Sequence record: LR756502.1
Reading direction: 5' to 3' (one strand)
DNA length: 64,000 nt
Shown here: piece after piece, positions 1,661 to 51,214 of the stretch
Position numbering within the stretch: the stretch's first letter is position 1
Layout: each line of letters begins with the position of its first letter
Position numbers and translations under genes: made by a program
Notes under the pieces: generated by a model
Seen by the model: the letters and a program-made list of their open reading frames with translations, nothing else
The model's database searches: none
What the model was told of the DNA's origin: nothing

Positions 1661-1746
1661 GTGTCCGTGAGTGAATGGTTGAAACTACCAGTCTTTTAAA
1701 CTGGCTACCGAAAGGTACAATGTGGGTTCGAATCCCACCGGGCACA
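1661..1746 (+). tRNA. tRNA with Lys(UUU) anticodon and long variable arm
   Basis: CCAGT-CTTTTAA-ACTGG; V-arm TACC-GAAA-GGTA; A73. Confidence 0.85.
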
Positions 1747-1758
1747 CAAACATACAAT

Positions 1759-1847
1759 GTTTCTGTCGCTCAGCGGTCGAGAGCATCGGTCTTTTAAACC
1801 GAAGGATTTATATCCCATCGTGAGTTCAAATCTCACCAGGAACACCA
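1759..1847 (+). tRNA. tRNA with Lys(UUU) anticodon and long variable arm
   Basis: TCGGT-CTTTTAA-ACCGA; V-arm GGAT-TTAT-ATCC; encoded CCA. Confidence 0.85.
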
Positions 1848-1848
1848 A

Positions 1849-1929
1849 GGATCTGTCGCTTAGCGGCTATAGCAACTGGCTCTTAACCAGTCGAGAAATC
1901 AACCGTGGGTTCGAGTCCCACCAGATCCA
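1849..1929 (+). tRNA. tRNA-Lys(CUU) with 13-nt variable region
   Basis: ACTGG-CTCTTAA-CCAGT; variable CGAGAAATCAACC. Confidence 0.85.
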
Positions 1930-1933
1930 CAAA

Positions 1934-2260
1934 ATGATACTATACAGACCAGTAAACGGAAAGGAATTGGATTTGATAATCGAAAGTGGATATACAAAAT
2001 TCCCACCAAGATTACCAGAGCAACCAATCTTTTATCCAGTATTAAATAAAGAATATGCAATACAAATAACTAAGGAGTGGAACATTCCAGCCTATGGAGT
2101 TGGATATGTAACTGAATTTGATGTAGATGATACTTATATCAGTCAGTTTACAACTAAAAATGTAGGTGGTGAAATTCATAATGAACTATGGATACCATCT
2201 GAAAGATTGGAGGAGTTTAATAATAAAATTATAGGAAAAATTAGAATTATACAGATATGA
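1934..2260 (+). CDS. Conserved protein of the LYRPV..FPPRLPEQPIFYPV family (often labelled ADP-ribosylation/crystallin J1)
   Basis: True start is ATG 1934, after the tRNAs; motif recognised from memory. Confidence 0.55.
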   Translation: MILYRPVNGKELDLIIESGYTKFPPRLPEQPIFYPVLNKEYAIQITKEWNIPAYGVGYVTEFDVDDTYISQFTTKNVGGEIHNELWIPSERLEEFNNKIIGKIRIIQI

Positions 2261-2976
2261 AATATCTCATAGGGATCCAGCCAACTGGAAGAATACATAT
2301 TGGTAACTATTTAGGTTGCTTAAAGAAAGGACTCGATTTACAGAATCAAGGACATGAAGTTACATTTTTAATTGCTAACTACCATTCACTAACAACTGAT
2401 AGTTATACTGATGAAACTGAAAAGGAATTAGTTAGACTTGGATGTAAGAACATTAAAAGACAGACTCCTGAATATACTGAGTTGTTTTTCAAACTATGTT
2501 GCAAGATAAATTTAGCAACATTACAGAAGATGCCTCAATTCAAGGATAAGAAAGGGACAGTTGATTTTGATATGGGTATTTTATTATATCCTGTTCTAAT
2601 GACAGCTGATATTATGATGAATGATCCAGATGTTGTTATAGTTGGTAAAGACCAAGTTCCACATTTAGATTTATGTAATGATATTTCTAAAAGAGTTGGT
2701 GGTAAAGAATATAAGTATGAATTTGGTGATGTTGATAAGATAATGTCACTTAGTGATCCTACTAAGAAAATGTCTAAATCATTAGGTGAGAAACATGTTC
2801 TTTATCTATTTGATGAGGATTATAAAAAGAAAATTAGAAGTGCCAATGCGAATGAAGAGGGTTTAGAAAATCTTAAGAAACTTGGAAGAAGTCTCGGAGT
2901 CGATATTGATAAGTGTGTATTGAATGTTGAGTTGAAAGATGCAATTGCTCAGAAGATGGAAGAAATTTTCATTTAG
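2257..2976 (+). CDS. trpS: Tryptophanyl-tRNA synthetase, shortened (239 aa)
   Basis: GIQPTG..HIGNY, YPVLMTADI, VGKDQ.PHL, KMSKS. Confidence 0.9.
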   Translation: MKYLIGIQPTGRIHIGNYLGCLKKGLDLQNQGHEVTFLIANYHSLTTDSYTDETEKELVRLGCKNIKRQTPEYTELFFKLCCKINLATLQKMPQFKDKKGTVDFDMGILLYPVLMTADIMMNDPDVVIVGKDQVPHLDLCNDISKRVGGKEYKYEFGDVDKIMSLSDPTKKMSKSLGEKHVLYLFDEDYKKKIRSANANEEGLENLKKLGRSLGVDIDKCVLNVELKDAIAQKMEEIFI

Positions 2977-3108
2977 AAACCTATTTATGATGGTAGAATA
3001 GAAGAGCATGAATTATCTGAGTGTTGGAAGAAAAAGAATGGTAGATGGAATTTTGAATGCAAGTACTAAAAATCAGAAAAAACAGATTTTAGACTTAATA
3101 TATAAGTT

Positions 3109-3369
3109 ATGAAAAACGTATTTAATTTTGCAGACTTTGTTAACGAGGAACTAAAAAAACTCCCAACTACTTATAACTTCAAGAGTGAATCTGAAGATAA
3201 AAAACATGATAAACTAGCTTCTAAAAAGAAGGAAGGTCATATCTGGAAAAAGACTGTTAGTAAACACGGTAAAGAATCTAAGACTGAGAATTTTTCTTGT
3301 GAGTGTGGATATAAGAAGAAGGTTGAAAATGATGAGAATAAGAATGTTACAATTACTTATTCAAAATAA
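3109..3369 (+). CDS. Hypothetical protein with N-terminal tag variant (MKNVFNFADFVNEE)
   Basis: ORF behind TAATATATA. Confidence 0.6.
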   Translation: MKNVFNFADFVNEELKKLPTTYNFKSESEDKKHDKLASKKKEGHIWKKTVSKHGKESKTENFSCECGYKKKVENDENKNVTITYSK

Positions 3370-3393
3370 TTAGGATAAAATAAAAACAATTAG

Positions 3394-3401
3394 TATATTT
3401 G
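3394..3401 (+). promoter_or_regulatory. Bacteroidota sigma-A -7 element TAnnTTTG (representative copy)
   Basis: Also at 5603, 16798, 20897, 36526, 49897, 54202, 58860, 61975 and others, often with TTTG about 20 nt upstream. Confidence 0.8.
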
Positions 3402-3419
3402 TAATATAAATAAGAAGAA

Positions 3420-3555
3420 ATGAAAACAACTATTAAAAATACAAGTTCACGTAGTCGCTCGAGTAAATCGGGTGAGGTTCGACTGTATTCATAATAGTTA
3501 GTATAAACATATTGTGTAAACCCTCGAACTTAACCGTTTGAGGGTTTTTTGTTTT
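3420..3555 (+). promoter_or_regulatory. Attenuator 2: leader MKTTIKNTSSRSRSSKSGEVRLYS (3420-3494) + terminator (3518-3555)
   Basis: Ser x7, Arg x3; GGTTCGA (3476-3482) pairs with TCGAACT (3524-3530); followed by Arg/Ser tRNAs. Confidence 0.8.
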
Positions 3556-3560
3556 AAAAT

Positions 3561-3632
3561 GGCTTCATCGTCCAATGGATAGGACACTCCGCTACGAACG
3601 GAGAAATTTGGGTTCGAGTCCCTATGAGACTA
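3561..3632 (+). tRNA. tRNA-Arg(ACG)
   Basis: CTCCG-CTACGAA-CGGAG. Confidence 0.85.
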
Positions 3633-3708
3633 CAAATGAATATCACAGGAGAGTGTATTAAGTTGCAACCCGCGTAAATTGTGAAGGACAATCTGTGATA
3701 TTCAAATT

Positions 3709-3792
3709 GGAAGAGTAATTAAGCTGGCGCTTGACCTAGTCTTGAAAACTAGCGGTACCTACGGGTATGGGGATCGATACCTCACTCTTCCA
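3709..3792 (+). tRNA. tRNA-Ser(UGA)
   Basis: CTAGT-CTTGAAA-ACTAG, V-arm. Confidence 0.85.
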
Positions 3793-3797
3793 CAAAT

Positions 3798-3884
3798 GGA
3801 AGGTTGGCAGAGTCCGGCTTATTGCACCAGTCTTGAAAACTGGAGGTCCTTCGGGATCCGTGAGTTCGAATCTCACATCTTCCT
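3798..3884 (+). tRNA. tRNA-Ser(UGA)
   Basis: CCAGT-CTTGAAA-ACTGG, V-arm. Confidence 0.9.
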
Positions 3885-3889
3885 CTAAT

Positions 3890-3975
3890 GGAGATCAATC
3901 TACTCTGGTGAGTAGCGGCGTTTGCTAAACGTTCGGCACGTTCAATCGTGTGGGGTTCAATTCCTCTGGTCTCCT
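3890..3975 (+). tRNA. tRNA-Ser(GCU)
   Basis: GGCGT-TTGCTAA-ACGTT, V-arm. Confidence 0.85.
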
Positions 3976-4030
3976 CAATCATTAGTGGGGAAAGGACATC
4001 TTTAAGGGGTGAGGTGGGTTCCCTTAAATT

Positions 4031-4115
4031 GGAAGATAAGCTAATCGGGTGATTAGCCACGCTTGGAAAGCGTTGGGTACGTTCAATCGTATGGGCTTCG
4101 ATGCTCTATCTTCCT
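4031..4115 (+). tRNA. tRNA-Ser(GGA)
   Basis: ACGC-TTGGAAA-GCGT, V-arm. Confidence 0.85.
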
Positions 4116-4120
4116 CATAA

Positions 4121-5988: not shown

Positions 5989-6186
5989 ATGGCAACACAT
6001 ACAAATACACTAACCTCACATCATGGTGAGAGTAGAACATCTAGAGCAGATAAAATGTCTGGTTGGATATCAGAATATAAAAGAATATTTGGTAAATCGG
6101 GAACATCGATGAAAACTGCCAAGACAATAAGTAATAGGAAAAGAAGAATGTTCTTAAAGAACAAAAAAAATTGGACAAAATTATGA
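5989..6186 (+). CDS. Small basic hypothetical protein
   Basis: 65 aa ORF, overlaps next gene. Confidence 0.55.
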   Translation: MATHTNTLTSHHGESRTSRADKMSGWISEYKRIFGKSGTSMKTAKTISNRKRRMFLKNKKNWTKL

Positions 6187-6836
6187 AATCATACCCGAGT
6201 ATAGACTATTTTGATAAAGGACTGTTTGGTGATACTGTTTGGGTATTCGACAAATTGGATGGATCAAATCTTAGAATGGAGTGGAACCGTAAGAGAGGGT
6301 GGTATAAATTTGGAACAAAGTCTGTAATGATTGATGTTAGTAATCCAGATTTTGGAGAAGCTATTCCTATATTTATGGAGAAATATTCCGATGATTTAGA
6401 GAGAGTATTTAAGAAAGAATATTCCAATGTTGAAAGCATTGTTGTTTTCTGTGAGTTTGTTGGAGACAACTCATTCGCTGGTCAGCATCTTGCTTCAGAT
6501 AAGAAGGATGTAGTTCTTTTTGATGTTAATCTTTATAAGAAAGGATTTATACATCCAAAAGATTTCCTCGATAACTTCGGACATCTCCATATACCCAAGT
6601 TGGTATATAAAGGAGAATATAATGACGACCTTATCAAAGATGTTAGAGATAATATCTGGGGTCTAAAAGAAGGTGTAATATGTAAAGGAGTTAGAAAAAC
6701 AAAAGGTGACCACATAGTCTGGATGACTAAGATTAAAACCATCGAATGGTTAAATAAAGTAAAAGAAAAATATGGAGAGAAGGCTCTCCTTGAAGAATTA
6801 AACAATAATAAAAAACTATTAAATTATGGAAATTAA
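6171..6836 (+). CDS. RNA ligase-like nucleotidyltransferase (Rnl2-type core)
   Basis: Motif I KLDGSN, CEFVG, LFDV, EGVICK, KIK. Confidence 0.75.
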   Translation: MDKIMKSYPSIDYFDKGLFGDTVWVFDKLDGSNLRMEWNRKRGWYKFGTKSVMIDVSNPDFGEAIPIFMEKYSDDLERVFKKEYSNVESIVVFCEFVGDNSFAGQHLASDKKDVVLFDVNLYKKGFIHPKDFLDNFGHLHIPKLVYKGEYNDDLIKDVRDNIWGLKEGVICKGVRKTKGDHIVWMTKIKTIEWLNKVKEKYGEKALLEELNNNKKLLNYGN

Positions 6837-7458
6837 ATTAGAATCAACGTATAAAGGAACTCGAATATTATTCGCTGAATCAGCTAAAAGAAAAAGAGAT
6901 ATATTAAATAAGATGATTGAAGTTCTTGAGTCCTATGGGTATCAGGAAATTATGATTCCTATTATTCAAAAACAAGAAACATTCCAATCAAAGGTGGGTG
7001 CTGAAAATCAAAACATGATGTTTAACTTCAAAGATAGAGGTGATCGTGATTTATGTTTATCCCCAGAGTATACCGCAATCGTTCAACAACTTGCTAAAGA
7101 GAAATTCAAATTCACAAACAATGTGAAGATGTTTTATATCGGTGAGTGTTTTAGAGGAGAAAATACACAAGCTGGAAGATGGAGACAATTTACTCAGTTT
7201 GGTGTTGAGATTATAAACCCAACAAAGGACTATTCTGATGAGATGGTTGAAATTGCTGGAAAACTAATTGAGTTAGTTACAAAAAATTATGAGACAAACC
7301 TAGATGCAACTCGTGGACTTGACTACTATAAAGGTGGTAAAGGATTTGAAATAGCTTGTCCAGAATTAGGTTCATCAAAGCAAGTTTGTGGCGGTGGTAC
7401 TTATGAAGGTGGTTTGGGATTCGCAGTGGGTGTTGATAGACTACTATTATGCAAATAA
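6826..7458 (+). CDS. hisS: Histidyl-tRNA synthetase catalytic core only (210 aa)
   Basis: LSPEYTA, motif 2 FRGENTQAGRWRQFTQFGVE, GLDYY, motif 3 GFAVGVDRL; no anticodon-binding domain. Confidence 0.8.
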   Translation: MEIKLESTYKGTRILFAESAKRKRDILNKMIEVLESYGYQEIMIPIIQKQETFQSKVGAENQNMMFNFKDRGDRDLCLSPEYTAIVQQLAKEKFKFTNNVKMFYIGECFRGENTQAGRWRQFTQFGVEIINPTKDYSDEMVEIAGKLIELVTKNYETNLDATRGLDYYKGGKGFEIACPELGSSKQVCGGGTYEGGLGFAVGVDRLLLCK

Positions 7459-7721
7459 GAGAAATAAAAATATCACTCCAGCAAAAGGACGGATATCTCT
7501 ACTTCAGAACTGGATCAGATCCAGTTGAAGTTGAAGTGAAGATAGAATTTGGCACTGCTAAAAATCTGAGGGATTTTTTACATAGTGGTGAAAAACTATG
7601 CAGTGTAGATAAAAATCTTGTGAAGATAATAAAAATTAATAAAATGAGACATACCTCTGTTGAGGCAACAATACAAAAAATTACTCTAAGAGAGTATAAT
7701 TTAGAAAGGTTACTATTATGA
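7449..7721 (+). CDS. Hypothetical protein with C-terminal tag (LREYNLERLLL)
   Basis: ORF track. Confidence 0.55.
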   Translation: MQIREIKISLQQKDGYLYFRTGSDPVEVEVKIEFGTAKNLRDFLHSGEKLCSVDKNLVKIIKINKMRHTSVEATIQKITLREYNLERLLL

Positions 7722-8431
7722 ACACAAAGAAAAGATTAAAGAATTTAAGAAATATCGCACCTGACTATCCGAGGATACCTCATTTAGACAAGTCTATATC
7801 AAATATGACACATGATGATATTCAACTTGAGTTACCGATTCAATTCCCATTTACTTGTTGGGTACAGGAGAAGATAGATGGCGCAAACATTGGTGTCTCT
7901 TGGACAAGCGGTCCACTTATTAGAAATAGAAACAACATTCTTAAAAAGGGATATATTGAGAAGGAAACTCCAGCTAAACTTCAGTTTAGACCGGCTTGGA
8001 ATTGGATACATGAGCATGGAAAAGAGATTAGAGATATCTCCAAAGAGATTATGTCACCTATAACAATATATGGTGAGTGGATGATAGCTAAGCATTCAAT
8101 TGAATATAATAAGCTAAGTGATTGGTTTATTGCATATGATATTTATTCTGCTGAGGATGGAAGATTCTTCGCTCCTGATATTGTTGATAGTATCTTATCA
8201 AAAACAAGTATTAAATATATCAAACCAAGTAAAGTCACCTTTGATAATATTGACGAAATTGTTGAGTACTCTGAGAGAAAATCAGAATATAGAGATGGCG
8301 TTAGAGAGGGTATTGTTATTAAGGTATCAGATGGTAGATTCGTTGGTCAATCATTTAAGGTGGTAAATAGACACTTTGTTCGTAGAGAGGACTTCAATAC
8401 CATTGATATAATTAAGAATAAATTATCCTAG
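7718..8431 (+). CDS. Second RNA ligase-like protein
   Basis: YPRIPHL, QEKIDGANIG, IYGEW, FIAYDI, EGIVIK, FKVV. Confidence 0.75.
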   Translation: MNTKKRLKNLRNIAPDYPRIPHLDKSISNMTHDDIQLELPIQFPFTCWVQEKIDGANIGVSWTSGPLIRNRNNILKKGYIEKETPAKLQFRPAWNWIHEHGKEIRDISKEIMSPITIYGEWMIAKHSIEYNKLSDWFIAYDIYSAEDGRFFAPDIVDSILSKTSIKYIKPSKVTFDNIDEIVEYSERKSEYRDGVREGIVIKVSDGRFVGQSFKVVNRHFVRREDFNTIDIIKNKLS

Positions 8432-15932: not shown

Positions 15933-16487
15933 CTATATATGTTTCCATCTTCTTCTATTTACTATATTCGCTACTGTTTGCTTTGCTATTCCATATTTCT
16001 TTACCAGCTTTCCATATGAGTAACCGCTTTCTCTTAATGATCTTAGCTCTCTTACTTGATCTTCTGTAAGCTTTGATTTTCCGTTTTTTTCTCCCGGACA
16101 TTTTTGTATACCATTTCCTTCTTTTATTCTCTTGTACATTATCTCTCTTAGCTTAGCCTTGGTTTCCTCGCTGTGTTTTTTACCACTCCAACAATCTCCC
16201 CCTTCTCCACCATTTGTTCCATTATAAAGTTTAAATCCCCAAGATTTTATTTGTGATATCCAGAATTTTTCCCAATAGTCCTCTTCTCCTTTATTGACTA
16301 TATCTATAATGGAGATAGTGATATCTTCTCCATTGGATAGTATTTTATTTATTTTTTTTTCTTTATGTGTCCTTTTTAGTATGCACTCCTTTTTATGTTT
16401 ATTTAGTCTTGTAGATAGGCTTATTGTCTTACCTACATAGAATAGGGTGTTATTGTGCTCAAGTGTGTATATGTAATATTTTTCCAT
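15933..16487 (-). CDS. GIY-YIG homing endonuclease with NUMOD3 and C-terminal HTH
   Basis: YYIYTL..FYVGKT, GKKHSEETKAKL, GEKNGKSKLTEDQV. Confidence 0.85.
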   Translation of the reverse strand: MEKYYIYTLEHNNTLFYVGKTISLSTRLNKHKKECILKRTHKEKKINKILSNGEDITISIIDIVNKGEEDYWEKFWISQIKSWGFKLYNGTNGGEGGDCWSGKKHSEETKAKLREIMYKRIKEGNGIQKCPGEKNGKSKLTEDQVRELRSLRESGYSYGKLVKKYGIAKQTVANIVNRRRWKHI

Positions 16488-16570: not shown

Positions 16571-16675
16571 TGCGGGGTAGGGAAGTGGTCATCCCGAGAC
16601 GCTCGTTTTTGATTCTTAAATGATGAAGAAGTGAGATAACGTTTAGATCGTTGGTTCGAATCCAACCCATCGCTA
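16571..16675 (+). tRNA. Initiator-Met-like tRNA interrupted by a 31-nt insert in the anticodon loop
   Basis: AGACG-CTC[31 nt]ATAA-CGTTT; intact D- and T-arms; U1:U72 mismatch. Confidence 0.65.
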
Positions 16676-17160: not shown

Positions 17161-17245
17161 GCTACGGTATGCAAATTGGACTAAGCGCCCAGACTTTCAA
17201 TCTGGTCACGAAAGTGGATTGCGGGTTCGAATCCCGTCCGTAGTA
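17161..17245 (+). tRNA. tRNA with Glu(UUC) anticodon, Leu-like body and variable arm
   Basis: CCAGA-CTTTCAA-TCTGG; V-arm CAC-GAAA-GTG. Confidence 0.8.
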
Positions 17246-17354: not shown

Positions 17355-17426
17355 GGTCCTGTCGACTAAAGGTTAGGTCAACACCCTTTCAAGGTGTAGA
17401 TACGGGTTCGATCCCCGTCAGGATCA
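17355..17426 (+). tRNA. tRNA-Glu(UUC)
   Basis: ACACC-CTTTCAA-GGTGT. Confidence 0.9.
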
Positions 17427-17966: not shown

Positions 17967-18037
17967 GCAAAATGTAGCTTAGTGATAAAGCACCTCACTT
18001 CCAATGAGGGGATGGAGTTTGATTCTCACATTTTGCT
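17967..18037 (+). tRNA. tRNA-Gly(UCC)
   Basis: CCTCA-CTTCCAA-TGAGG. Confidence 0.8.
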
Positions 18038-18042
18038 CAATA

Positions 18043-18115
18043 GCAGTAGTGGTGTTAATGGTTAGCACAGGAGATTTCCACTCTTCTGGTGTCGGTTCGA
18101 ATCCGGTCTACTGCA
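18043..18115 (+). tRNA. tRNA-Gly(UCC)
   Basis: GGAGA-TTTCCAC-TCTTC. Confidence 0.85.
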
Positions 18116-18177
18116 CAAAAGAAAAAATTGTGGGTGATGGGACTTCAACTATTTTAATATATAAAAATAAAATAGTT

Positions 18178-18804
18178 ATGTATCATACAATTTATAAAAT
18201 AACAAATATACTAAATGATAAAATTTATATAGGCAAACACTCAACAGAAAATTTAGACGATAGTTATATGGGGTCTGGTTCTTATATTAGAAGATCCATA
18301 AAAAAATATGGAGTTGAGAATTTTAAGAAAGAGATTTTGTTTATATTTGATAGCTCAGAAGAGGCATATAAAAAAGAAATAGAAATTGTTAATGAAGACT
18401 TTGTATTAAGAACAGACACTTATAATATTATAACTGGAGGTGATTCATTTGAGGCAATTAACTCTAATGAAGAACTTAGAAAGGAAAAAAATAAAAGGGC
18501 AGCAGTATCAATGAATAGAATTAATTGGACAAATCCTGAGTTTATAAAAAGAAACCATGATAGAATGTCTGAACAAAATAAGAGATTATTTAATGAGGGA
18601 ATACTTAAAGCACCTGATTGGACAGGTAGAAAACACAAGGATGAAACCAAAATTAAACAAAGTATTTCAGCTAAAAAAAGAATTAGAGAGAAAAATAAAC
18701 ATTGTTGGGTATATCATTACGTAGATGGTAATAAAAAAATAAAAATATCCGAAATAGATACATATCTAATCAATGGATGGATAAAGGGAAGAATAATGAA
18801 ATGA
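18178..18804 (+). CDS. GIY-YIG (Seg-like) homing endonuclease inside the tRNA array
   Basis: IYKITN..KIYIGKHST..YMGSG; NUMOD3-like GRKHKDETK; true start ATG 18178. Confidence 0.9.
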   Translation: MYHTIYKITNILNDKIYIGKHSTENLDDSYMGSGSYIRRSIKKYGVENFKKEILFIFDSSEEAYKKEIEIVNEDFVLRTDTYNIITGGDSFEAINSNEELRKEKNKRAAVSMNRINWTNPEFIKRNHDRMSEQNKRLFNEGILKAPDWTGRKHKDETKIKQSISAKKRIREKNKHCWVYHYVDGNKKIKISEIDTYLINGWIKGRIMK

Positions 18805-24288: not shown

Positions 24289-24885
24289 GTGAATATGATG
24301 ATTAGAGTTTTAGATAAGATTCCTAAAGGTGATTTTGGATTGGCTTGTTCAGGTGGTGTGGACTCAATGGCTATTCTTGACTTCCTGCTAAAGGGTGGAT
24401 ATAACCCACAAGTTATTTATTTTAACCACAATACAAAGCATGGTGATGAAGCTGAAAAGTTTATCACCGATTATTGTTTGCATAATAGATTAAAACTAAC
24501 TATTGGTCGTACTGACCTTAAACCTACTTCAAATAAAGAAAAGATTTGGAGTGATGCTCGATATGAGTTTTTTTCTAAATTTGAATTTCCTATTATCACT
24601 TGTCATCACTTAGATGATTGTGTTGAAACATATATATTTACTATGTTGCGTGGGTTTCAATCAGTTATTCCATACACAAAGGGGAATGTAATTAGACCAT
24701 TCTTATTGAATGAGAAACATGTATTTTCTAGTTGGTGTAATGATAAGGGAGTTCCATTCATTGAGGATGAGTCCAATTCAAGTGTAGATTATTCAAGAAA
24801 TAGAATCAGACATAATATTGTCCCGGAAGCTTTGAAGGTTAATCCAGGATTAAAGACGGTTGTTAAAAAAATGCTTATGAAATGA
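24289..24885 (+). CDS. tilS: tRNA(Ile)-lysidine synthetase, catalytic domain only
   Basis: ACSGGVDSM, HHLDDCVET, IRPFL, YSRNRIRH. Confidence 0.88.
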   Translation: MNMMIRVLDKIPKGDFGLACSGGVDSMAILDFLLKGGYNPQVIYFNHNTKHGDEAEKFITDYCLHNRLKLTIGRTDLKPTSNKEKIWSDARYEFFSKFEFPIITCHHLDDCVETYIFTMLRGFQSVIPYTKGNVIRPFLLNEKHVFSSWCNDKGVPFIEDESNSSVDYSRNRIRHNIVPEALKVNPGLKTVVKKMLMK

Positions 24886-29808: not shown

Positions 29809-29887
29809 GCCCTTGTAGTCGAGTCAGTTTTCTAAACTGTTAATCGTAATGGAAAGGAAGATGCAGGTTCGAATCCTGTCTAGGGTA
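29809..29887 (+). tRNA. D-armless tRNA-like RNA, Arg(UCU) anticodon
   Basis: CAGT-TTTCTAA-ACTG; variable region with CGTAATGG; normal T-arm. Confidence 0.6.
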
Positions 29888-30557: not shown

Positions 30558-30637
30558 GCCAATGTGGCTCAGCGGCGACAGCACCGCTTTTGTAAAGCGG
30601 AACACAAACAGCGGGGGTTCGAGTCCCTCCATTGGCT
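30558..30637 (+). tRNA. tRNA-Thr(UGU) with 12-nt unpaired variable loop
   Basis: CCGCT-TTTGTAA-AGCGG. Confidence 0.85.
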
Positions 30638-30642
30638 CAAAT

Positions 30643-30715
30643 GCCTTTATGACGTAATTGGTAGTCGTATGCGCCTTAGAAGCGTAGTGTCTCGGTTCGA
30701 GTCCGAGTAGAGGTA
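30643..30715 (+). tRNA. tRNA-Leu(UAG) lacking the variable arm
   Basis: TGCGC-CTTAGAA-GCGTA then only GTGT before the T-arm. Confidence 0.8.
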
Positions 30716-30725
30716 CAAAATTAAT

Positions 30726-30800
30726 GCCCCGGTGACGTAATAGAGTTAGTCGTATCCGGCTTAAAATCGGAGTGCATGGGTTCGAGTCCCATCTGGGGTA
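30726..30800 (+). tRNA. tRNA-Leu(UAA) lacking the variable arm
   Basis: TCCGG-CTTAAAA-TCGGA then only GTGC before the T-arm. Confidence 0.8.
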
Positions 30801-30815
30801 CAAATGGTGTTAATT

Positions 30816-36565: not shown

Positions 36566-38038
36566 ATGAATATCGTAACAAGAATAGCGCCTTCACCGAC
36601 AGGATCCTTCGCCCATATTGGGAACGTAAGAACTCTATTGTATAATTACTTTCTAGCTAAGCGTCACGGAGGTAAATTCCTTGTGCGTCTAGAAGATACT
36701 GACCGTGATCGATATACACCTTCGTTCCTTAACTATTTTAAGGACATGTGTGATTGGTTAGGAATAGTTCCTGATGCTTCTTACTGGAGCCCAGATACAT
36801 CTATTGGAACCTTTGTTCAATCAACAACTGACTATTCTACTAAGATTAATTTCTTACTTGATAATGGGTTTGCTTATTATGCTTTCGATTCTAAAGACGA
36901 TTTGGATAAGGCACATAAGTCAATTGCTAATTTCAAATATGATTCCACTACTCGTTTGAGTATGAAGAACTCTCTAACTATGTCTAAGGACGATGTTGCT
37001 AACGCAATTGTAACAACTCCTTATGTTATTCGTTTTATGGTGTCTCCAAATATCGATATAACTGTTAATGATGCAATCCTTGGTGATATCAAAATCAGTT
37101 CAAATACTATCGATGATAAAGTTTTAATGAAGTCCAACGGGGTTCCATCATATACATTGGCTAATGTTTGTGACGATCACGATATGGGGATTACTCACGT
37201 GCTTCGTGGTAACGAGTGGGTACCTTCCACACCTTGTCATATTCTACTTTACAAGGCGTTTGGTTGGGATGTTCCTACATTTGCTCACTTACCATTGATT
37301 ATGAATCCAGATGGTAAAGGCAAACTATCTAAGAGAACTGCTGCTAAGTATGGTATTCCAATTGCCCCATTAGGTTATACTGATGGTGATGGTATCTATG
37401 TAAATGGTTGGAAAGACCTTGGGTACGATCCAAAAGCTTTCATAAACGCTTTATCCTTAATTGGTTGGAATCCTGGACATGATGTTGAAATTATGTCAAT
37501 GGGTGATATGATTAAAAACTTCTCACTTGACCGTGTTCATAAGGCCGGTGCTCGTTTTGATATGGATAAGGCTAAATGGATTAACTCTCAATATATTAAG
37601 AATACACCAAACTCTTGTTTGCTTCCTTATATTGATGTTAAAGATGATAGGTACTCTGATGATAAGTTAGATATGATTATATCTTTAGCTAAAGATAGAT
37701 CTGACTTCAAATACGATTTGAATAAAATTGTAGATTTATTCTTCAATGATCCAATCATTAAAGACTATTCAAAGATTGATGATAACTATACAAGAGTTAT
37801 GTCAACATTCAACTATAAGATTGACTCAGTTGACTTTAGTGATGTTAATTTAATTAAAGATAGTATATCAAAAATCTGTGACGATTTAGGTGTTAAGATG
37901 GGTAAAGTAATGCCTGGATTAAGAATGGCTTTGGTTGGTGGAATTGCTGGTCCTGACTTAATGACAACAATGTTAATTCTTGGTAAAGACCAAGTTAAAG
38001 ATAGAATTATCAAATCTGGTAAAAGAGTAACTGTGTAA
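36566..38038 (+). CDS. gltX: Glutamyl-tRNA synthetase
   Basis: RIAPSPTG..HIGN, RLEDTD, DDHDM.ITHVLRG.EW, KLSKR, anticodon-binding helical domain. Confidence 0.95.
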   Translation: MNIVTRIAPSPTGSFAHIGNVRTLLYNYFLAKRHGGKFLVRLEDTDRDRYTPSFLNYFKDMCDWLGIVPDASYWSPDTSIGTFVQSTTDYSTKINFLLDNGFAYYAFDSKDDLDKAHKSIANFKYDSTTRLSMKNSLTMSKDDVANAIVTTPYVIRFMVSPNIDITVNDAILGDIKISSNTIDDKVLMKSNGVPSYTLANVCDDHDMGITHVLRGNEWVPSTPCHILLYKAFGWDVPTFAHLPLIMNPDGKGKLSKRTAAKYGIPIAPLGYTDGDGIYVNGWKDLGYDPKAFINALSLIGWNPGHDVEIMSMGDMIKNFSLDRVHKAGARFDMDKAKWINSQYIKNTPNSCLLPYIDVKDDRYSDDKLDMIISLAKDRSDFKYDLNKIVDLFFNDPIIKDYSKIDDNYTRVMSTFNYKIDSVDFSDVNLIKDSISKICDDLGVKMGKVMPGLRMALVGGIAGPDLMTTMLILGKDQVKDRIIKSGKRVTV

Positions 38039-43687: not shown

Positions 43688-46384
43688 ATGTTAAAAAGAA
43701 TATTTCTAAGTTGTGCAATCCTCCTCTTGTCTTTGTATACAAAGGCTCAAATGGTAGGAACCGACGCATATATACAAGGTACTAGCGTTGAAATTGGTAT
43801 TAATGGATTAGGTGGATATGAGGGAGTTAACCAAACTACATCACCACCTCCAGCGGGATATCATGCTCGTGGTACATTTCTACCATTTGGATTTATTGCA
43901 AATCCCCAGGTAAATTCTTGGGCTACTTATGATGGTGACTTTTTTACTCCTGGTAGTCCAGAGAATGGTTGGGGATTCCAAATTGGGTCAACAACCGGAT
44001 CCGCTAACTCTAGAGGTAATAATTGTGCTGGTTTGCAACAAATTAATGGTAGTTTTACAAACTGGTCTCATAACTTCAACTGTTATAATGCTACATGGGA
44101 AGGAGATTACACTTCGGCAACAGACATTCACTTTACTATAAGTTATGATCTTGTTCAGACTGATTTATTTTACACAACAACTGTTTCTATAACAAATAAT
44201 ACTACTGCTACTATTCCAGATTTATATTACTATAGAAATGTTGACCCTGATAATAATGAGGAGATAAGTGGTACCTTTACAACAACACAAACAATAGTAA
44301 GTCAACCAGCTTCTGGTTGTAACCTAGCACACGTTCAGGCCACATCACCAACACCTTGGAACTCGTATCTTGGGTTTGCTGCTATTGGTGCTAATTGGAG
44401 AGCAGACTATGGTGGATTTAGTAATAGAGCCGCTGCTGATTTATGGACTGGTCTTGGATTTACACAAACTGTTGGTGCCACAAATACCGCAGATGAGGGA
44501 ATATCACTAGCATATAGAATACAAAATCTTGCTCCAGGTGCTACAGAAACATTTAAATTTGTGGTTATTTTAGACCCATCATCAGCTACGGCAGCAATTA
44601 ACAACCTACTTTACTTATCATATCCAGGTTCATTAACAGCTCCGCCATCTGTTTGTACACCTTATGCCGATACAATTAGAACATGTGGTGGACCAGTTCC
44701 TATTAACATTGCCGGACCTATTGTTGGTGATTTTAGCTGGACGTGGACACCAACTACTGGTTTAACACCAATTACTGGACCATCTGTTAGTGCTAACCCT
44801 AGTGTAACAACAACATATACCGCAGTTGGTACACCTTTAAGCGCTTGTGTAACACCGGTTTCACTAACATTTGTTGTTTTAATAACTCCGGGTGGTGGAA
44901 CCGCACCTTATATAACACCAGTTGCTCCAGTATGTATCACGACACCACCTTTTAATTTTGTGGCTGATACTCTTGGTGGAGTATGGAGTGGAACAGGAAT
45001 TAGTCCTACAGGAACCTTTAATCCCGCAACTGCTGGAGCTGGTACGTATTTAATAACATATACGACAACCAATACTTGTAATCCTATAGATACAACATAT
45101 ATTACAGTAAGTGGTTCAGACCCTACAATAACTACACATATTCCTGTTTGTGCAGGTTCCTCACCTTATACTTTAACTGCCGCATCTACTGGTGGTGTAT
45201 GGAGTGGTGGTGGAATTAGTCCTACAGGAGTTTTTACACCTAGTACTGCCGGTACTTTTGTTATAACATACACACTTTCAGGGTTGTGTGCAGCAACAGA
45301 TACCGTAACATTAGTTGTAAACCCAACCGTACCACCGATAACAGGTATTTCATACATCACACCTGTATGTATAAGTGGTACTAACCCAACACCAATACCT
45401 GTATCAGGATTCACTGTCGGTGGTGTATATAGTTCAACACCAGGATTATCTTTGAATACTGGAACTGGAGTTGTAAATTTAGCGGGTAGTACACCTGGTA
45501 CATATACAATAACATATTCTTATGCAGCAACTGTTTGTGGACCGGCAGGTTCAAGTAGTACAACTTTAGTTATAACTCCACTAATAGTGCCAGTTTTAGG
45601 ATTCTCATATAATAGTGTTTGTGTTGATGGTGTTGATCCATCCCCTATCACAGTTGCTGGATTTACAACCGGTGGTGTTTACTCATGTCCTGGTTTATCA
45701 ATAAACCCAGCAACTGGAGTAATAGACTTATCATCTAGTTCACCTGGTACATATACTGTTACATATACTGTTACAGGATCATCTGTTCTATGTACCTCTG
45801 GTGGTACTAGTACATCTACTATAACTATTAAACCACTTCCGGTTATAATTATATCTTCTGATCAAACAATATTTCTTGGTCAAAGTACGCTTATATTTGC
45901 TAGTGGTGGAACAATATATAATTGGAGTCCCTCACAAGGGTTGAATACAACTACTAATGATAGTGCTATTGCTTCACCAGTTGTAACAACAACATATTGT
46001 GTTGGTGTTTCTAGTTTAGGTTGTATTGATACAATGTGTGTTAAAGTTAATGTTGAAATTCCTTGTCCAAGTAATAGAAATATGGGAGTACCAAATGCAT
46101 TTACTCCAAATGGTGATGGTAATAATGATCAACTATGTTTAGATGGTTGGGATGATTGTATCTCAAACTTTGAAATAAGAATATTTGACCGTTGGGGTGA
46201 GAAAGTATTTGAATCTAAAAATCCTGGCTTTTGTTGGGATGGTGTGTATAAGGGTAAGCCTTTAGATCCAGCTGTCTTTGTTTACTACATTACTGCATCA
46301 TATAATGTTGATGGTGTTTTACCAACATCACAGACAAGTACTACTAAGGTTAATAAAACAGGAAATATCTCATTGATTAGATAA
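43688..46384 (+). CDS. Secreted Thr/Gly/Pro-rich surface protein with T9SS type B (gliding-motility-associated) C-terminal domain
   Basis: Signal peptide; repeated Ig/PKD-like units (GGVWSG.GI...G.F.P); VPNAFTPNGDG.ND..IFDRWGEKVFES..WDG.YKG. Confidence 0.88.
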   Translation: MLKRIFLSCAILLLSLYTKAQMVGTDAYIQGTSVEIGINGLGGYEGVNQTTSPPPAGYHARGTFLPFGFIANPQVNSWATYDGDFFTPGSPENGWGFQIGSTTGSANSRGNNCAGLQQINGSFTNWSHNFNCYNATWEGDYTSATDIHFTISYDLVQTDLFYTTTVSITNNTTATIPDLYYYRNVDPDNNEEISGTFTTTQTIVSQPASGCNLAHVQATSPTPWNSYLGFAAIGANWRADYGGFSNRAAADLWTGLGFTQTVGATNTADEGISLAYRIQNLAPGATETFKFVVILDPSSATAAINNLLYLSYPGSLTAPPSVCTPYADTIRTCGGPVPINIAGPIVGDFSWTWTPTTGLTPITGPSVSANPSVTTTYTAVGTPLSACVTPVSLTFVVLITPGGGTAPYITPVAPVCITTPPFNFVADTLGGVWSGTGISPTGTFNPATAGAGTYLITYTTTNTCNPIDTTYITVSGSDPTITTHIPVCAGSSPYTLTAASTGGVWSGGGISPTGVFTPSTAGTFVITYTLSGLCAATDTVTLVVNPTVPPITGISYITPVCISGTNPTPIPVSGFTVGGVYSSTPGLSLNTGTGVVNLAGSTPGTYTITYSYAATVCGPAGSSSTTLVITPLIVPVLGFSYNSVCVDGVDPSPITVAGFTTGGVYSCPGLSINPATGVIDLSSSSPGTYTVTYTVTGSSVLCTSGGTSTSTITIKPLPVIIISSDQTIFLGQSTLIFASGGTIYNWSPSQGLNTTTNDSAIASPVVTTTYCVGVSSLGCIDTMCVKVNVEIPCPSNRNMGVPNAFTPNGDGNNDQLCLDGWDDCISNFEIRIFDRWGEKVFESKNPGFCWDGVYKGKPLDPAVFVYYITASYNVDGVLPTSQTSTTKVNKTGNISLIR

Positions 46385-48308: not shown

Positions 48309-48310
48309 AT

Positions 48311-48874: not shown

Positions 48875-48876
48875 CT

Positions 48877-49437: not shown

Positions 49438-49440
49438 AAT

Positions 49441-49860: not shown

Positions 49861-49957
49861 AATTAAAATTAATTTGGTAAATTGAAAACTTCTTCCTATA
49901 TTTGTAATAGAATTAAAAATAACAAAAACACGCTTTAAAAAGCTGATATATACTAAA

Positions 49958-50119
49958 ATGAAAAACTTAATCTTAAATATCGCAATTCAAGTACAACGTC
50001 AAGTTGTTGTCGATCAGGATCAACCGGATACGACTGAGGCTAATTGCGATTTTATAAGAGAGTAAAATAATACTTGAATTATACAAACCCAGTTAGTCTA
50101 TGATTAACTGGGTTTTTTT
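49958..50119 (+). promoter_or_regulatory. Attenuator 7: leader MKNLILNIAIQVQRQVVVDQDQPDTTEANCDL (49958-50056) + terminator (50085-50119)
   Basis: Asp x4, Gln x5, Pro; GGCTAATTG (50038-50046) pairs with CAGTTAGTC (50090-50098); followed by Pro/Asp tRNAs. Confidence 0.75.
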
Positions 50120-50130
50120 ATTGCTTAAAA

Positions 50131-50203
50131 CGCGAAGTGACTGAGGTTTAAGCGAGAGTGGTCTGGAGCCATTTTTTAGTCAGTTCGATTCTGACCTTCG
50201 CGA
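50131..50203 (+). tRNA. Atypical tRNA-Pro(UGG), C33/A37
   Basis: C1:G72, A73; AGTGG-TCTGGAG-CCATT. Confidence 0.65.
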
Positions 50204-50211
50204 CAAAATTA

Positions 50212-50286
50212 CGGAAATTGGGCTAATTGGTAAGCCGCTTCATTTGGGATGAAGACATCGTGTGGGTTCAAGTCCCGCATTTCCGA
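50212..50286 (+). tRNA. tRNA-Pro(UGG)
   Basis: CTTCA-TTTGGGA-TGAAG. Confidence 0.9.
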
Positions 50287-50291
50287 CAAAT

Positions 50292-50366
50292 GGCTCGTGG
50301 TACTGCACGGTGTGGTAACCTGTTTGTCAAACAGGATACAGATGGGATCATTACCCATACGAGTCA
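50292..50366 (+). tRNA. tRNA-Asp(GUC)
   Basis: CCTGT-TTGTCAA-ACAGG; unusual D-arm, A73. Confidence 0.8.
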
Positions 50367-50371
50367 CAAAA

Positions 50372-50443
50372 GGTCTATTAGTGAAATGGCTATCATCCCA
50401 CACTGTCACTGTGGAGTAGACGGATCGAAACCGTCATAGACCG
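50372..50443 (+). tRNA. tRNA-Asp(GUC)
   Basis: CCACA-CTGTCAC-TGTGG, G73. Confidence 0.9.
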
Positions 50444-50508
50444 CAAGAGATTAATTTGGAATCTTAAACCTTGCAAAAGCGAGGACTGGTAATATTTTAA
50501 TCTCATAT

Positions 50509-50583
50509 GGTTCGTGGAACTGCACGGTGTGGTTACTTGATTGTCAATCAGGACACAGACGGGATCGTTACCCGTACGAATCA
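50509..50583 (+). tRNA. tRNA-Asp(GUC), paralogue of 50292
   Basis: CTTGA-TTGTCAA-TCAGG. Confidence 0.8.
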
Positions 50584-50588
50584 CAAAA

Positions 50589-50662
50589 CGAGAAGTGACT
50601 AAGGCTTTAAGCACGGGTGATCAGGAGTCATCTGTTAGTGGGTTCAATTCCAACCTTCTCGA
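50589..50662 (+). tRNA. Atypical tRNA-Pro(AGG), C33/A37
   Basis: C1:G72, A73; GGTGA-TCAGGAG-TCATC. Confidence 0.65.
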
Positions 50663-50670
50663 CAAATATA

Positions 50671-50744
50671 AAGATGTTGATCGTCTAATGAAAGGTTCCC
50701 CTACGGAGGGGAGGGTTTGGGTTTGATTCCCAAGAGACGTTTTT
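50671..50744 (+). pseudogene. Degenerate tRNA-Arg(ACG)
   Basis: TCCC-CTACGGA-GGGA and T-arm; weak acceptor. Confidence 0.5.
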
Positions 50745-50752
50745 ATGTTAAC

Positions 50753-50822
50753 GGTGCTGTCGTCTAATGATAGGATGCTCCCATTGGAGGGAGTGATGTA
50801 GGTTTGATTCCTAACTGTACCG
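50753..50822 (+). pseudogene. tRNA-like gene with 6-nt anticodon loop (ATTGGA)
   Basis: CTCCC-ATTGGA-GGGAG; D- and T-arms present. Confidence 0.5.
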
Positions 50823-50833
50823 CAAAAATAATA

Positions 50834-50902
50834 CGAGATGTAGCCTATTGGCATGAGGCACTAGTTTTGTGAACTAGACGAAGCAGGTTCCTGTCATCTC
50901 GA
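50834..50902 (+). pseudogene. Pro-type body with UGU anticodon and deleted T-loop
   Basis: CGAGATG/CATCTCG; CTAGT-TTTGTGA-ACTAG; GCAGG-TT-CCTGT. Confidence 0.55.
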
Positions 50903-50936
50903 CAAGAGAGAAACAAAATATTAATAAATAGAAATT

Positions 50937-51052
50937 ATGACAACTTCATTTCAGCAACAACAGCAACAACAAATTAATCGAACAGATTGATGTGGAATGA
51001 TATTGTTTAAATATTACACCCGTTAGTCTGAGGAGATTAACGGGTTTTTTAT
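50937..51052 (+). promoter_or_regulatory. Attenuator 8: poly-Gln leader MTTSFQQQQQQQINRTD (50937-50990) + terminator (51018-51052)
   Basis: 7 consecutive CAG/CAA codons; CAGATTGATG (50983-50992) pairs with CGTTAGTCTG (51021-51030); followed by 4 tRNA-Gln and glnS. Confidence 0.9.
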
Positions 51053-51123
51053 TGTCCGATAGTGTAGAGGTAACACAAGGGTCTTTGGTCCCCTTATCAC
51101 TGGTTCGATCCCAGTTCGGATAA
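51053..51123 (+). tRNA. tRNA-Gln(UUG)
   Basis: U1:A72; CTTTGGT loop. Confidence 0.85.
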
Positions 51124-51130
51124 CAAATAT

Positions 51131-51214
51131 TGCGGAATCCCATAATGGCATTGGTCCTGACTTTGAATCAGGTGGAATGAAAATTCTGTGTAGGTTCGAA
51201 TCCTACTTCCGCAT
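51131..51214 (+). tRNA. tRNA-Gln(UUG) with long variable arm
   Basis: CCTGA-CTTTGAA-TCAGG; V-arm GGAAT-GAAA-ATTCT. Confidence 0.85.

Follow-up and report, generated by a model that had tools for sequence, protein, structure and literature searches.

Lysine, glutamate and glutamine tRNA genes with an extra variable-region hairpin in a 642-kb phage

[quoted passage not shown] The question arose from a 64,000-nucleotide stretch (hereafter the window) of LR756502.1, the 642-kb genome of a Bacteroidota phage. The original prediction listed five such genes with variable regions of 13-17 nt, four of them with clear stems. This observation was confirmed, although the list proved incomplete. ARAGORN called all five genes as tRNAs, and Rfam RF00005 scored them at 48-63 bits against a 29-bit threshold. 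The genes, with orthologues given as numbered comparison loci (for example L002:5294), are as follows.

1661..1747 (+): tRNA-Lys(UUU), 87 nt, with a 17-nt variable arm (C-TACC-GAAA-GGTA-CAAT; 4-bp stem, GAAA loop, 4-nt 3' tail), a 3-bp D stem and A73. Orthologues L002:5294, L083:3516 and L073:5804 have different but complementary stems, and the 15:48 pair covaries.
1759..1847 (+): tRNA-Lys(UUU), 89 nt with an encoded CCA, a 17-nt variable arm (A-GGAT-TTAT-ATCC-CATC; GGAT/ATCC stem, TTAT loop), a class I-type 4-bp D stem and A73. Orthologues are L083:3412 (GGGA/TCCC) and L010:12682 (GAC/GTC).
1849..1930 (+): tRNA-Lys(CUU), 82 nt, with a 13-nt variable region that forms at most a 2-bp stem. It looks like a shortened derivative of a UUU lineage; its body is 90-91% identical to L010:12587 and L002:5384 (both UUU, with 15-19 nt arms), and it also matches the 87-nt tRNA-Lys of Caulobacter phage CcrRogue.
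17161..17246 (+): tRNA-Glu(UUC), 86 nt, with a 15-nt variable arm (TCAC-GAAA-GTGG-ATT; TCAC/GTGG stem, GAAA loop, 3-nt tail), G1:U72 and A73, lacking the U11-A24 and U13-G22 features of E. coli-type tRNA-Glu. Class I Glu paralogues lie at 17355 and 17523.
51131..51215 (+): tRNA-Gln(UUG), 85 nt, with a 17-nt variable arm (T-GGAAT-GAAA-ATTCT-GT; 5-bp stem, GAAA loop, 2-nt tail, Leu-like geometry). U1:A72 is kept, and the gene has U73 whereas its class I neighbours have A73.

Four further genes that had not been listed depart from the class rule.

30558..30638 (+): tRNA-Thr(UGU), 81 nt, with a 12-nt A/C-rich unstructured variable region, an instance of the same phenomenon. It recurs in L062:2686, L090:2661 and L016:3614, with stemmed versions in L085:6146 and L088:1911, and is commoner in loci that hold long Lys, Gln or Glu genes (15/75 against 1/39).
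29809..29887 (+): a weak Arg(UCU)-like tRNA with a reduced D arm and a variable region of about 23 nt, supported by 31.9 bits in Rfam, low-threshold ARAGORN and reading of the sequence. It is syntenic with the Arg(UCU) gene L003:56, which has a 23-nt variable region.
30643..30801 (+): two class I (short variable loop) Leu-anticodon tRNAs, UAG at 30643-30716 and UAA at 30726-30801, the mirror-image class switch. The same family in the relative carries UAA, UAG and CAA, and all 46 class I Leu genes in the viral sample keep A73.

RNAfold alone recovered a cloverleaf plus an extra hairpin for the genes at 1661, 1759 and 51131, and the hairpin for the gene at 17161. The Rfam covariance model placed the extra 9-14 nt as an insertion inside the variable region. 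The pairing is more than chance. In sets of family members chosen by variable-region length only, every stem pair changes on both sides, 92% (15-nt regions) and 76% (17-nt regions) of cells are paired, and 0 of 500 shuffles reached the observed scores. Column-shuffle tests for Lys, Gln and Glu agreed, and the arm's stem covaries about as strongly as the anticodon stem. Because the sequences in these counts are related, the statistics overstate independence. Orthologous lineages have swapped whole stems (TACC/GGTA, GAGA/TCTC, TCC/GGA) on bodies that are about 80% identical.

These genes are not oddities of one genome. Scans of viral contigs found at least 114 long-arm Lys(UUU), at least 70 Gln(UUG) and at least 23 Glu(UUC) genes. 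Long-arm genes also occur in cultured Caulobacter phages and in bacterial tRNA arrays, including those of Acidobacteria, Bradyrhizobium and others. A condition set in advance against a special role, that such forms would be common in Bacteroidota tRNA sets, was not borne out in a partial genome scan: true cases sat in tRNA arrays, and none was in a Bacteroidota genome. We found no published description of these families.

The genes also appear to be needed. The three long-arm genes are the only Lys tRNAs in the 642-kb genome, which otherwise carries tRNAs for most amino acids, and the genome has no class II LysRS and no class IIb synthetase paralogue. AAA is the second commonest codon of the phage, at 48 per 1000 codons. 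In 87 of 108 viral loci the long-arm gene is the only Lys(UUU) nearby.

The original prediction offered three interpretations, namely nuclease-resistant replacements, orthogonal partners of the phage GluRS and GlnRS, or Leu/Ser-charged mistranslating tRNAs, and this set of readings is only partly supported. We first asked what amino acid the tRNAs are likely to carry. Families keep synonymous anticodons, and Lys families use only UUU and CUU. With the arm removed, the Lys genes are closest to each other and then to class I Lys. The discriminator base follows the isotype (Asn and Trp G73, Cys and Gly U73). Long Gln genes keep a weak 1:72 pair in 54 of 58 cases, and long Glu genes keep G1:U72 like class I Glu. 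The geometry of the Lys arm (0-1 nt on the 5' side, 3-4 nt on the 3' side) differs from that of Ser (1,1) and Leu (0,2). Cognate charging is therefore likely, although three observations temper this inference. E. coli GluRS needs residue 47 to be absent, plus U11-A24 and U13-G22; the gene at 17161 lacks all three, so a standard GluRS may charge it poorly. Class IIb synthetases approach tRNA from the variable-loop side, so the arm could hinder LysRS. Finally, the gene at 1661 has A73, A15:U48 and a Leu-like D loop, which are part of the E. coli LeuRS identity set.

Of the three readings, nuclease-resistant replacement fits best but remains an inference. The isotypes with expanded variable regions in the window (Lys UUU/CUU, Glu UUC, Gln UUG, Thr UGU and the Arg UCU-like gene) all have U-rich anticodons (6 of 6, P=1.2e-4), and two samples show odds ratios of about 3. 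They coincide with the preferred substrates of LshCas13a, which favours Lys UUU, Glu UUC, Gln UUG and Thr UGU. They coincide partly with the targets of the PARIS nuclease AriB, which cuts Lys UUU, Thr UGU and Asn GUU at 40/41 and touches the D loop. Candidate tRNA-repair enzymes lie 4-6 kb from the Lys cluster.

6171..8431 (+): two RNA-ligase-domain ORFs (6171-6836 and 7718-8431; PF09414 and phrog_548) flanking a HisRS-like fragment.

Several results weigh against this link. Cas13 cuts an isolated anticodon stem-loop and PrrC reads the anticodon loop, so an arm need not protect against either. In a control sample of phage loci with an ordinary Lys(UUU), long arms still occur (5.5%), mostly in Asn, Met, Ile and Cys, with no U-rich enrichment (OR 1.2, P=0.6), which weakens how general the association is. 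Locus-level co-occurrence of long Lys and long Thr is not significant.

The leading alternative, which we consider possible but less likely, is that the arms are tolerated baggage. In this view, fast-evolving phage tRNAs pick up insertions in the one loop that synthetases, EF-Tu and the ribosome mostly ignore, and the insert must then stay a compact hairpin so that the tRNA still folds, giving covariation without any adaptive role. The roughly 5% background of long variable regions across many isotypes in control loci, without anticodon bias, is consistent with this. So are an unstructured 11-13 nt subtype with no stem signal, the partly decayed look of the arm at 1849, and class I Leu genes, which show that the class rule is loose in phages generally. 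However, the arms persist across very distant phages and tRNA arrays although deleting them would be easy, and the same architecture recurs on different bodies. The long-arm gene is also the sole Lys(UUU) in most loci, and U-rich and U34 enrichment is seen in two samples and in the window.

A second, unlikely alternative is that the arm marks phage tRNAs as 'self' for phage-encoded factors: the phage's own GlnRS or GluRS (an orthogonal pair), its ligase or modification enzymes, or that it spares them from a phage-encoded nuclease that removes host tRNAs. GlnRS and GluRS are encoded in the window.

51398..52999 (+): phage GlnRS (Pfam; NCBIfam TIGR00440, 618 bits), starting 27 nt after the Gln tRNA cluster, an arrangement conserved in L003, L290, L248 and L301.
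36566..38038 (+): phage bacterial-type GluRS (TIGR00464, 386 bits).

An orthogonal pair is thus possible for Gln and Glu in this phage clade. The relative pairs an AsnRS with a long-arm Asn, a special GluRS would make sense for the gene at 17161, RNA ligases and a PP-loop enzyme are in the window, and the source paper suggests that phage synthetases charge phage tRNA variants. As a general explanation it fails. Lys has three long-arm genes but no class II LysRS anywhere in the genome. GlnRS lies near only 4 of 73 long-Gln loci and GluRS near 0 of 30 long-Glu loci, although many contigs are small. The relative has a GluRS but no long-arm Glu, and no phage tRNA nuclease was identified.

More doubtful still is a decoy role, in which the tRNAs bind host nucleases without being cut and act as competitive inhibitors, rather than or in addition to working in translation. 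The PARIS study raises the possibility that overexpressed viral tRNAs inhibit AriB by competition, and there are several Lys copies, three in the window and in relatives. Against it, intact acceptor stems, isotype-typical identity elements and the encoded CCA at 1759 point to charging, and these are the phage's only Lys tRNAs.

Mistranslation through LeuRS or SerRS is very unlikely: although bacterial LeuRS ignores the anticodon and needs A73 plus the tertiary core, the gene at 1661 has the Leu-like features noted above and some long-Gln bodies are closest to Leu bodies, long Gln in this phage and its relative has U73 or G73 whereas the class I Gln genes have A73, orthologues of 1661 have G15:C48, N73 and 1:72 track the anticodon across isotypes, the arms are shorter (3.5 bp) and differently angled than Ser arms (5 bp, 1/1), and these are the sole Lys tRNAs of a phage in which AAA is 48 per 1000 codons and whose enzymes score well under the standard code.

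Known systems offer partial parallels. Phage T5 tRNA-Lys(UUU), Thr(UGU) and Asn(GUU) variants that neutralise AriB, and mycobacteriophage anticodon-loop variants, are likewise phage-encoded isoacceptors of exactly the tRNAs that defence nucleases cut; they differ from host tRNAs near the cleavage site and supply translation when host copies are destroyed. Those cases escape through point substitutions in the anticodon stem-loop or D loop, whereas here the difference is a whole extra helix in the variable region and resistance is hypothetical. Nematode nev-tRNAs share class II architecture on anticodons (Gly/Ile) that are not Leu, Ser or Tyr, but they are eukaryotic and mischarged with Leu, whereas identity elements here follow the anticodon's amino acid. 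Allo-tRNAs and other irregular tRNAs of Acidobacteria, Clostridia and phages (Mukai et al. 2017) share long variable arms, diverse non-Ser anticodons and occurrence in phages and soil bacteria. Allo-tRNAs, however, are defined by an 8/4 or 9/3 acceptor/T-stem layout and Ser/Ala identity, and the genes here are canonical 7/5. Bacterial class II tRNA-Tyr versus its class I archaeal and eukaryotic counterparts, and the type I tRNA-Leu of Streptomyces coelicolor, show that an isotype can gain or lose the arm in evolution and still be charged by its own synthetase. Those are lineage-wide or housekeeping states, whereas here class I and class II versions of the same isoacceptor sit side by side in one phage cluster.

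Taken together, our analysis establishes the genes themselves, the position of the insertion, the family-wide covariation of the arm's stem, the wide distribution of the families, and the status of the three long-arm Lys genes as the phage's only Lys tRNAs. From sequence alone we infer, as probable, that these are elongator tRNAs for Lys, Glu and Gln (and Thr), charged with the amino acid that the anticodon specifies and serving the A/U-rich phage codons. For Lys this must be done by the host LysRS, because the phage has none; for Gln and Glu it could be the phage's own or the host's enzyme. The role of the arm is a more tentative inference, as is the explanation as a whole. The arm may be kept because it changes the tRNA's shape next to the 3' strand of the anticodon stem and the D arm. 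That would make the phage copies poor substrates for host tRNA-cleaving defences aimed at U-rich-anticodon tRNAs (PARIS-, PrrC/RloC- or Cas13-type), while synthetase, EF-Tu and ribosome would still accept them, as they accept natural class II tRNAs. The nearby RNA ligases would be a second line, repairing what is cut. Such genes, widespread and evolutionarily maintained in phages, may thereby help phage tRNAs escape bacterial tRNA-cutting defences.

The window (positions 372001-436000 of LR756502.1) holds 44 tRNA genes by ARAGORN, and an Rfam search returned 44 tRNA-type matches plus a GOLLD RNA. The original prediction named five Lys, Glu and Gln genes with 13-17 nt variable regions, four of them with clear stems. 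All five are present at their predicted positions and score 48-63 bits against a 29-bit threshold. The genes with expanded variable regions, and two Leu genes with the opposite change, are as follows.

1661, tRNA-Lys(UUU), 17-nt variable region with a stem
1759, tRNA-Lys(UUU), 17-nt variable region with a stem
1849, tRNA-Lys(CUU), 13-nt variable region with at most a 2-bp stem
17161, tRNA-Glu(UUC), 15-nt variable region with a stem
51131, tRNA-Gln(UUG), 17-nt variable region with a stem
30558, tRNA-Thr(UGU), 12-nt unstructured variable region
29809, weak Arg(UCU)-like gene, variable region of about 23 nt
30643-30716 and 30726-30801, tRNA-Leu(UAG) and tRNA-Leu(UAA), long arm lost

The hairpins of 1661, 1759, 17161 and 51131 have stems of 4-5 bp; three are capped by GAAA and one by TTAT. 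Two methods that do not depend on ARAGORN agree. RNAfold recovered a cloverleaf plus an extra hairpin for 1661, 1759 and 51131, and the hairpin for 17161. The Rfam covariance model placed the extra 9-14 nt as an insertion inside the variable region for the four genes whose alignments were inspected, the three Lys genes and Glu 17161. The predicted observation is therefore confirmed, although the list was incomplete, as it lacked the Thr, Arg-like and Leu genes.

Measured against class II tRNA architecture, the four stemmed genes have both the length (10 nt or more) and the stem-loop, and family covariation supports the stem. Lys(CUU) 1849 and Thr(UGU) 30558 satisfy the length criterion only. 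The D arm is mixed: 1661, 17161 and 51131 have 3-bp D stems with 9-12 nt loops, whereas 1759 has a class I-type 4-bp D stem. The anticodons (UUU, CUU, UUC and UUG) break the rule, still stated in recent reviews, that in bacteria this architecture is confined to Leu, Ser, Tyr and Sec acceptors. A 103-nt gene at 16572-16674 (Rfam 35 bits) initially looked like another long-arm tRNA, but Rfam places its roughly 31 extra nucleotides in the anticodon loop, like an intron. A GIY-YIG endonuclease gene lies just upstream on the opposite strand (15933-16487).

LR756502.1 is a 642,428-bp, unannotated genome of an uncultured phage from a French freshwater lake. It belongs to the 'Mahaphage' clade, which is predicted to infect Bacteroidetes, and a type IX secretion CHU_C domain in the ORF at 43688-46384 fits that host. 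The window is a translation island. It encodes a bacterial-type GluRS (36566-38038), a GlnRS (51398-52999) that starts 27 nt after the Gln tRNAs, a non-discriminating-type AspRS, a short TrpRS-like protein, a HisRS-like fragment, a PP-loop enzyme, two RNA ligases and GIY-YIG endonucleases. The PP-loop ATPase (24289-24885; TilS/TtcA-type tRNA-modification family) lies between the ribonucleotide reductase gene and the tRNA clusters. The two RNA-ligase-domain ORFs (6171-8431) flank the HisRS-like piece, a 210-aa catalytic fragment, and no kinase/phosphatase partner was recognised among the neighbouring ORFs. Homing endonucleases are embedded in the tRNA clusters; for example, a GIY-YIG/SegE-like ORF (18004-18804) begins inside the Gly(UCC) tRNA pair (17967-18116) on the same strand.

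The rest of the genome holds only two more tRNA genes, Met CAU and Arg UCU, and no further class IIb synthetase. The gap at 1408-1661, where a class I Lys gene might have been hidden, contains a Trp(CCA) tRNA instead. The three long-arm genes are thus the only Lys tRNAs of the phage, which has no class II LysRS. AAA is its second commonest codon, at 48 per 1000, and Lys makes up 7.7% of residues. About ten tRNAs of the window (at 1258, 17523, 19153, 30031, 30111, 30293, 30371, 50292, 50372 and 50509) have a T loop reading A-T-C-G/A-N-N-N (for example ATCGTTA) instead of TTCGAAT, with A54 replacing the universal T54, often with U58, as if the reverse-Hoogsteen 54:58 pair were swapped. At 62685-63174, a full-length GOLLD RNA (275 bits) is followed 10 nt later by a Glu-like tRNA whose anticodon loop is 6 or 8 nt (CTTTTCAG) rather than 7.

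Long-arm genes of this kind form a family. The 635-kb relative LR745206.1 (locus L003 in our sample) has one class I Lys and three long-arm Lys genes in the syntenic cluster, together with long-arm Gln(UUG), Asn(GUU) and Arg(UCU) genes and three class I Leu genes. It also encodes an AsnRS (L003:2523-3701) next to the cluster that holds the long-arm Asn(GUU) (L003:399-485), whose arm (GAC-GTAAAA-GTC-CACC) is nearly the Lys-type arm; the window has neither. The cultured Caulobacter phage CcrRogue has annotated tRNA-Lys genes of 87 and 90 nt. A pattern that only a long-variable-region Lys(UUU) can satisfy matched at least 119 viral contigs, in which ARAGORN confirmed 114 Lys(UUU) and 14 neighbouring Lys(CUU) genes, giving 108 unique sequences and 58 different stems. 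The usual layout is 0-1 nt, a 3-4 bp stem, a GNRA-type tetraloop and a 3-4 nt tail ending in C, alongside an unstructured A/C-rich subtype of 11-12 nt. Analogous scans gave at least 70 long-arm Gln(UUG) and 23 Glu(UUC) genes, after Ser(UGA) and Leu(CAA) genes caught by the same patterns were removed by ARAGORN classification.

In a genome collection, 32 of 120 loci held true long-arm Lys genes, and nearly all of these sit in dense arrays of 10-34 tRNA genes in Acidobacteria, Bradyrhizobium and other MAGs. None of these 32 loci was in a Bacteroidota genome. The other 88 loci gave no long-arm Lys call and were discarded; many are archaeal, where an intron is the likely cause, and the rest look like chance matches. 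Acidobacterial arrays (Terracidiphilus and related; genome-collection loci L127, L145, L160, L170, L182, L199, L209, L230 and others) of 10-31 genes per 8 kb share a near-identical long-arm Lys(UUU) with the arm GGGAGAAATCCCAAT. In a control sample of phage loci chosen for an ordinary class I Lys(UUU), 5.5% of tRNAs expected to be class I still have variable regions of 10 nt or more, mainly Asn, Met, Ile and Cys. Phage Ile(UAU) tRNAs at L019:4938, L020:6917, L027:8593, L029:8921, L035:3248, L050:11562, L055:4462, L057:2362, L086:1187, L090:4973 and L106:1513 (locus and position in the viral sample) carry a variable arm of about 22 nt whose loop has a conserved CCAGATTAG-like motif, which suggests a sequence-specific partner. 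Half of the Ile(UAU) genes in that sample have it.

The converse change affects Leu. In the window and in the relative (L003:1082, 1349 and 1933), class I Leu-anticodon tRNAs with a 4-nt variable loop (UAG and UAA, with CAA in the relative) sit beside normal class II Leu genes. All 46 such genes in the viral sample keep A73. Class I genes make up 34-48% of Leu genes in the phage loci sampled, with 34% in the control sample.

The arm is under selection. An initial, lenient test for any stem in the Lys arms gave only a modest contrast with shuffled sequences (75% against 48% with 3 bp or more), and was replaced with fixed-register and covariation tests. In alignments of sets chosen only by variable-region length, every pair of the arm's stem shows changes on both sides. 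For variable regions of 15 nt, 92% of cells are paired, with four pair types at each position; for 17 nt, 76% are paired. None of 500 shuffles reaches the observed scores, the signal collapses when the pairing register is slid, and the support is comparable to that of the anticodon stem. Column-shuffle tests agree for Lys at 14, 15 and 17 nt, Gln at 15 nt and Glu at 16 nt, but show no stem for Lys at 11-13 nt. Four orthologous Lys lineages in related huge-phage contigs have bodies about 80-90% identical, yet each has exchanged the whole stem for a different complementary one. In the 1661 lineage, the tertiary 15:48 pair covaries as well, from A:U to G:C.

The amino acid that these tRNAs carry is inferred from sequence. 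With the arm removed and the anticodon masked, long-arm Lys genes are closest to each other (100/111, a figure inflated by selection on a T-arm pattern); outside that group they are closest to class I Lys (33/111) and rarely to Leu, Ser or Tyr. The families do not spread over anticodons of different amino acids: Lys families carry only UUU and CUU, Gln families UUG and CUG, and the only cross-box link is Lys to Asn, with N73 switching to G. Across all long-arm isotypes, the discriminator base follows the anticodon's amino acid (G73 in Asn and Trp, U73 in Cys and Gly, A73 in Ile). Long Gln keeps the Gln-specific weak 1:72 pair in 54/58 genes, and long Glu keeps G1:U72 as class I Glu does. In this phage and its relative, the long-arm Gln has U73 (as in 51131) or G73, while the class I Gln genes have A73, the LeuRS determinant. 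The Lys arms have 0-1 unpaired nt on the 5′ side and 3-4 on the 3′ side, with stems of about 3.5 bp, whereas Ser arms are (1,1) with 5 bp and Leu arms are (0,2).

Lys identity rests on the anticodon and A73, and together with the genome-wide tRNA and synthetase content, cognate charging is the most economical reading. Three points cut the other way. Of the bacterial Leu identity set (A73, A15:U48, G18G19, A20a; for Ser, a long arm plus G73), gene 1661 carries A73 and A15:U48 with a Leu-like D loop, although its orthologues have G15:C48. Gene 17161 lacks the 'augmented D helix' and the missing residue 47 that E. coli GluRS requires. Finally, class IIb synthetases approach tRNA from the variable-loop side.

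Why the arm is kept is likewise a matter of inference; the genes, their distribution and the covariation of the stem are established by the analysis, whereas expression, charging and any resistance to cleavage are not. Of the three readings in the original prediction, nuclease-resistant replacement is plausible and has circumstantial support. The window encodes isoacceptors of tRNAs that defence nucleases target. PARIS AriB cleaves Lys UUU, Thr UGU and Asn GUU between nucleotides 40 and 41 and contacts the D loop; the arm emerges three or four nucleotides after that site, a comparison made without the host's own tRNAs or nucleases. LshCas13a prefers exactly Lys UUU, Glu UUC, Gln UUG and Thr UGU, which is the window's expanded set. 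All six expanded anticodons in the window fall in the 8-of-26 U-rich class (P=1.2e-4). In two samples of unselected neighbours, anticodons with two or more U carry arms about three times more often, and within an isotype U34 isoacceptors carry them about four times more often. Long Thr(UGU) co-occurs with long Lys, Gln or Glu (15/75 against 1/39), although locus-level co-occurrence of long Lys and long Thr is not significant. Two RNA ligases lie close to the Lys cluster, and the paper describing this phage notes that some huge phages carry genes for ligating tRNAs cleaved by host defences. Septu is reported to cleave the variable loop of tRNA-Tyr, so this part of a tRNA is a known defence target, which may also bear on the arm-less Leu genes.

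However, the U-rich bias, which had been expected to hold everywhere, is not universal. The control sample of loci with an ordinary Lys(UUU) shows no such bias, and the claim is limited to the window and to loci that already hold long Lys, Gln or Glu. Arms also occur in Met, Cys and Trp tRNAs, and Cas13 cuts an isolated anticodon stem-loop.

The second reading, orthogonal partners of phage synthetases, cannot be general. A cognate synthetase is encoded for Gln and Glu, but no class II LysRS was found in the genome. Within the roughly 8 kb examined per locus, GlnRS lies near only 4/73 long-Gln loci, all of them relatives of this phage, and GluRS near 0/30 long-Glu loci; the relative has a GluRS without a long-arm Glu. 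Such pairing remains possible for Gln and Glu within this clade. Leu/Ser mistranslation, the third reading, is unlikely given the anticodon sets, the N73 and 1:72 identities and arms that are shorter and differently angled than Ser arms. The original interpretation is thus supported in part.

The nearest functional analogue is the T5 set of Lys, Thr and Asn tRNAs, which defeat PARIS through point substitutions. The nearest structural analogues are the nematode nev-tRNAs, which are mischarged with Leu, and the allo-tRNAs (Mukai et al. 2017), defined by an 8/4 or 9/3 acceptor/T-stem layout; all five genes here are 7/5 by ARAGORN and by the Rfam alignment. For the arm-less Leu genes, a type I tRNA-Leu is known to be leucylated by a bacterial LeuRS in Streptomyces coelicolor. 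In the literature searched, which need not be exhaustive, no description was found of 7/5 long-arm Lys, Glu, Gln, Thr or Asn tRNAs in phages or tRNA arrays.

The confinement of long variable arms to Leu, Ser and Tyr (and Sec) tRNAs is a textbook statement about bacterial translation and underlies how SerRS, LeuRS and TyrRS tell their substrates apart. Hundreds of covarying long-arm Lys, Gln, Glu, Thr and Asn tRNAs, together with arm-less Leu tRNAs, in phage clusters show that this rule is routinely broken in the virosphere. The phenomenon is solid and surprising, even though its mechanism remains an inference. It raises concrete questions about how class II LysRS and GluRS tolerate an arm, offers natural scaffolds for engineered tRNAs, and warns annotators that length or class filters will misjudge phage tRNAs. 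If the arms block tRNA-cleaving defences, this would be a new escape mechanism, structural rather than based on point mutations, against a defence class (PARIS, PrrC/RloC, Cas13, retron/Septu, Schlafen) that is under intense study. A broader possibility, which we regard as tentative, is that phages systematically switch the structural class of their tRNAs, adding a class-II-type arm to class I isoacceptors (Lys, Thr UGU, Gln, Glu, Asn and others) and removing it from Leu, as a general, shape-based way to escape tRNA-targeting immunity while staying chargeable by host synthetases. This would add a new layer to the phage-bacteria arms race and provide a natural source of orthogonal-looking tRNA scaffolds.
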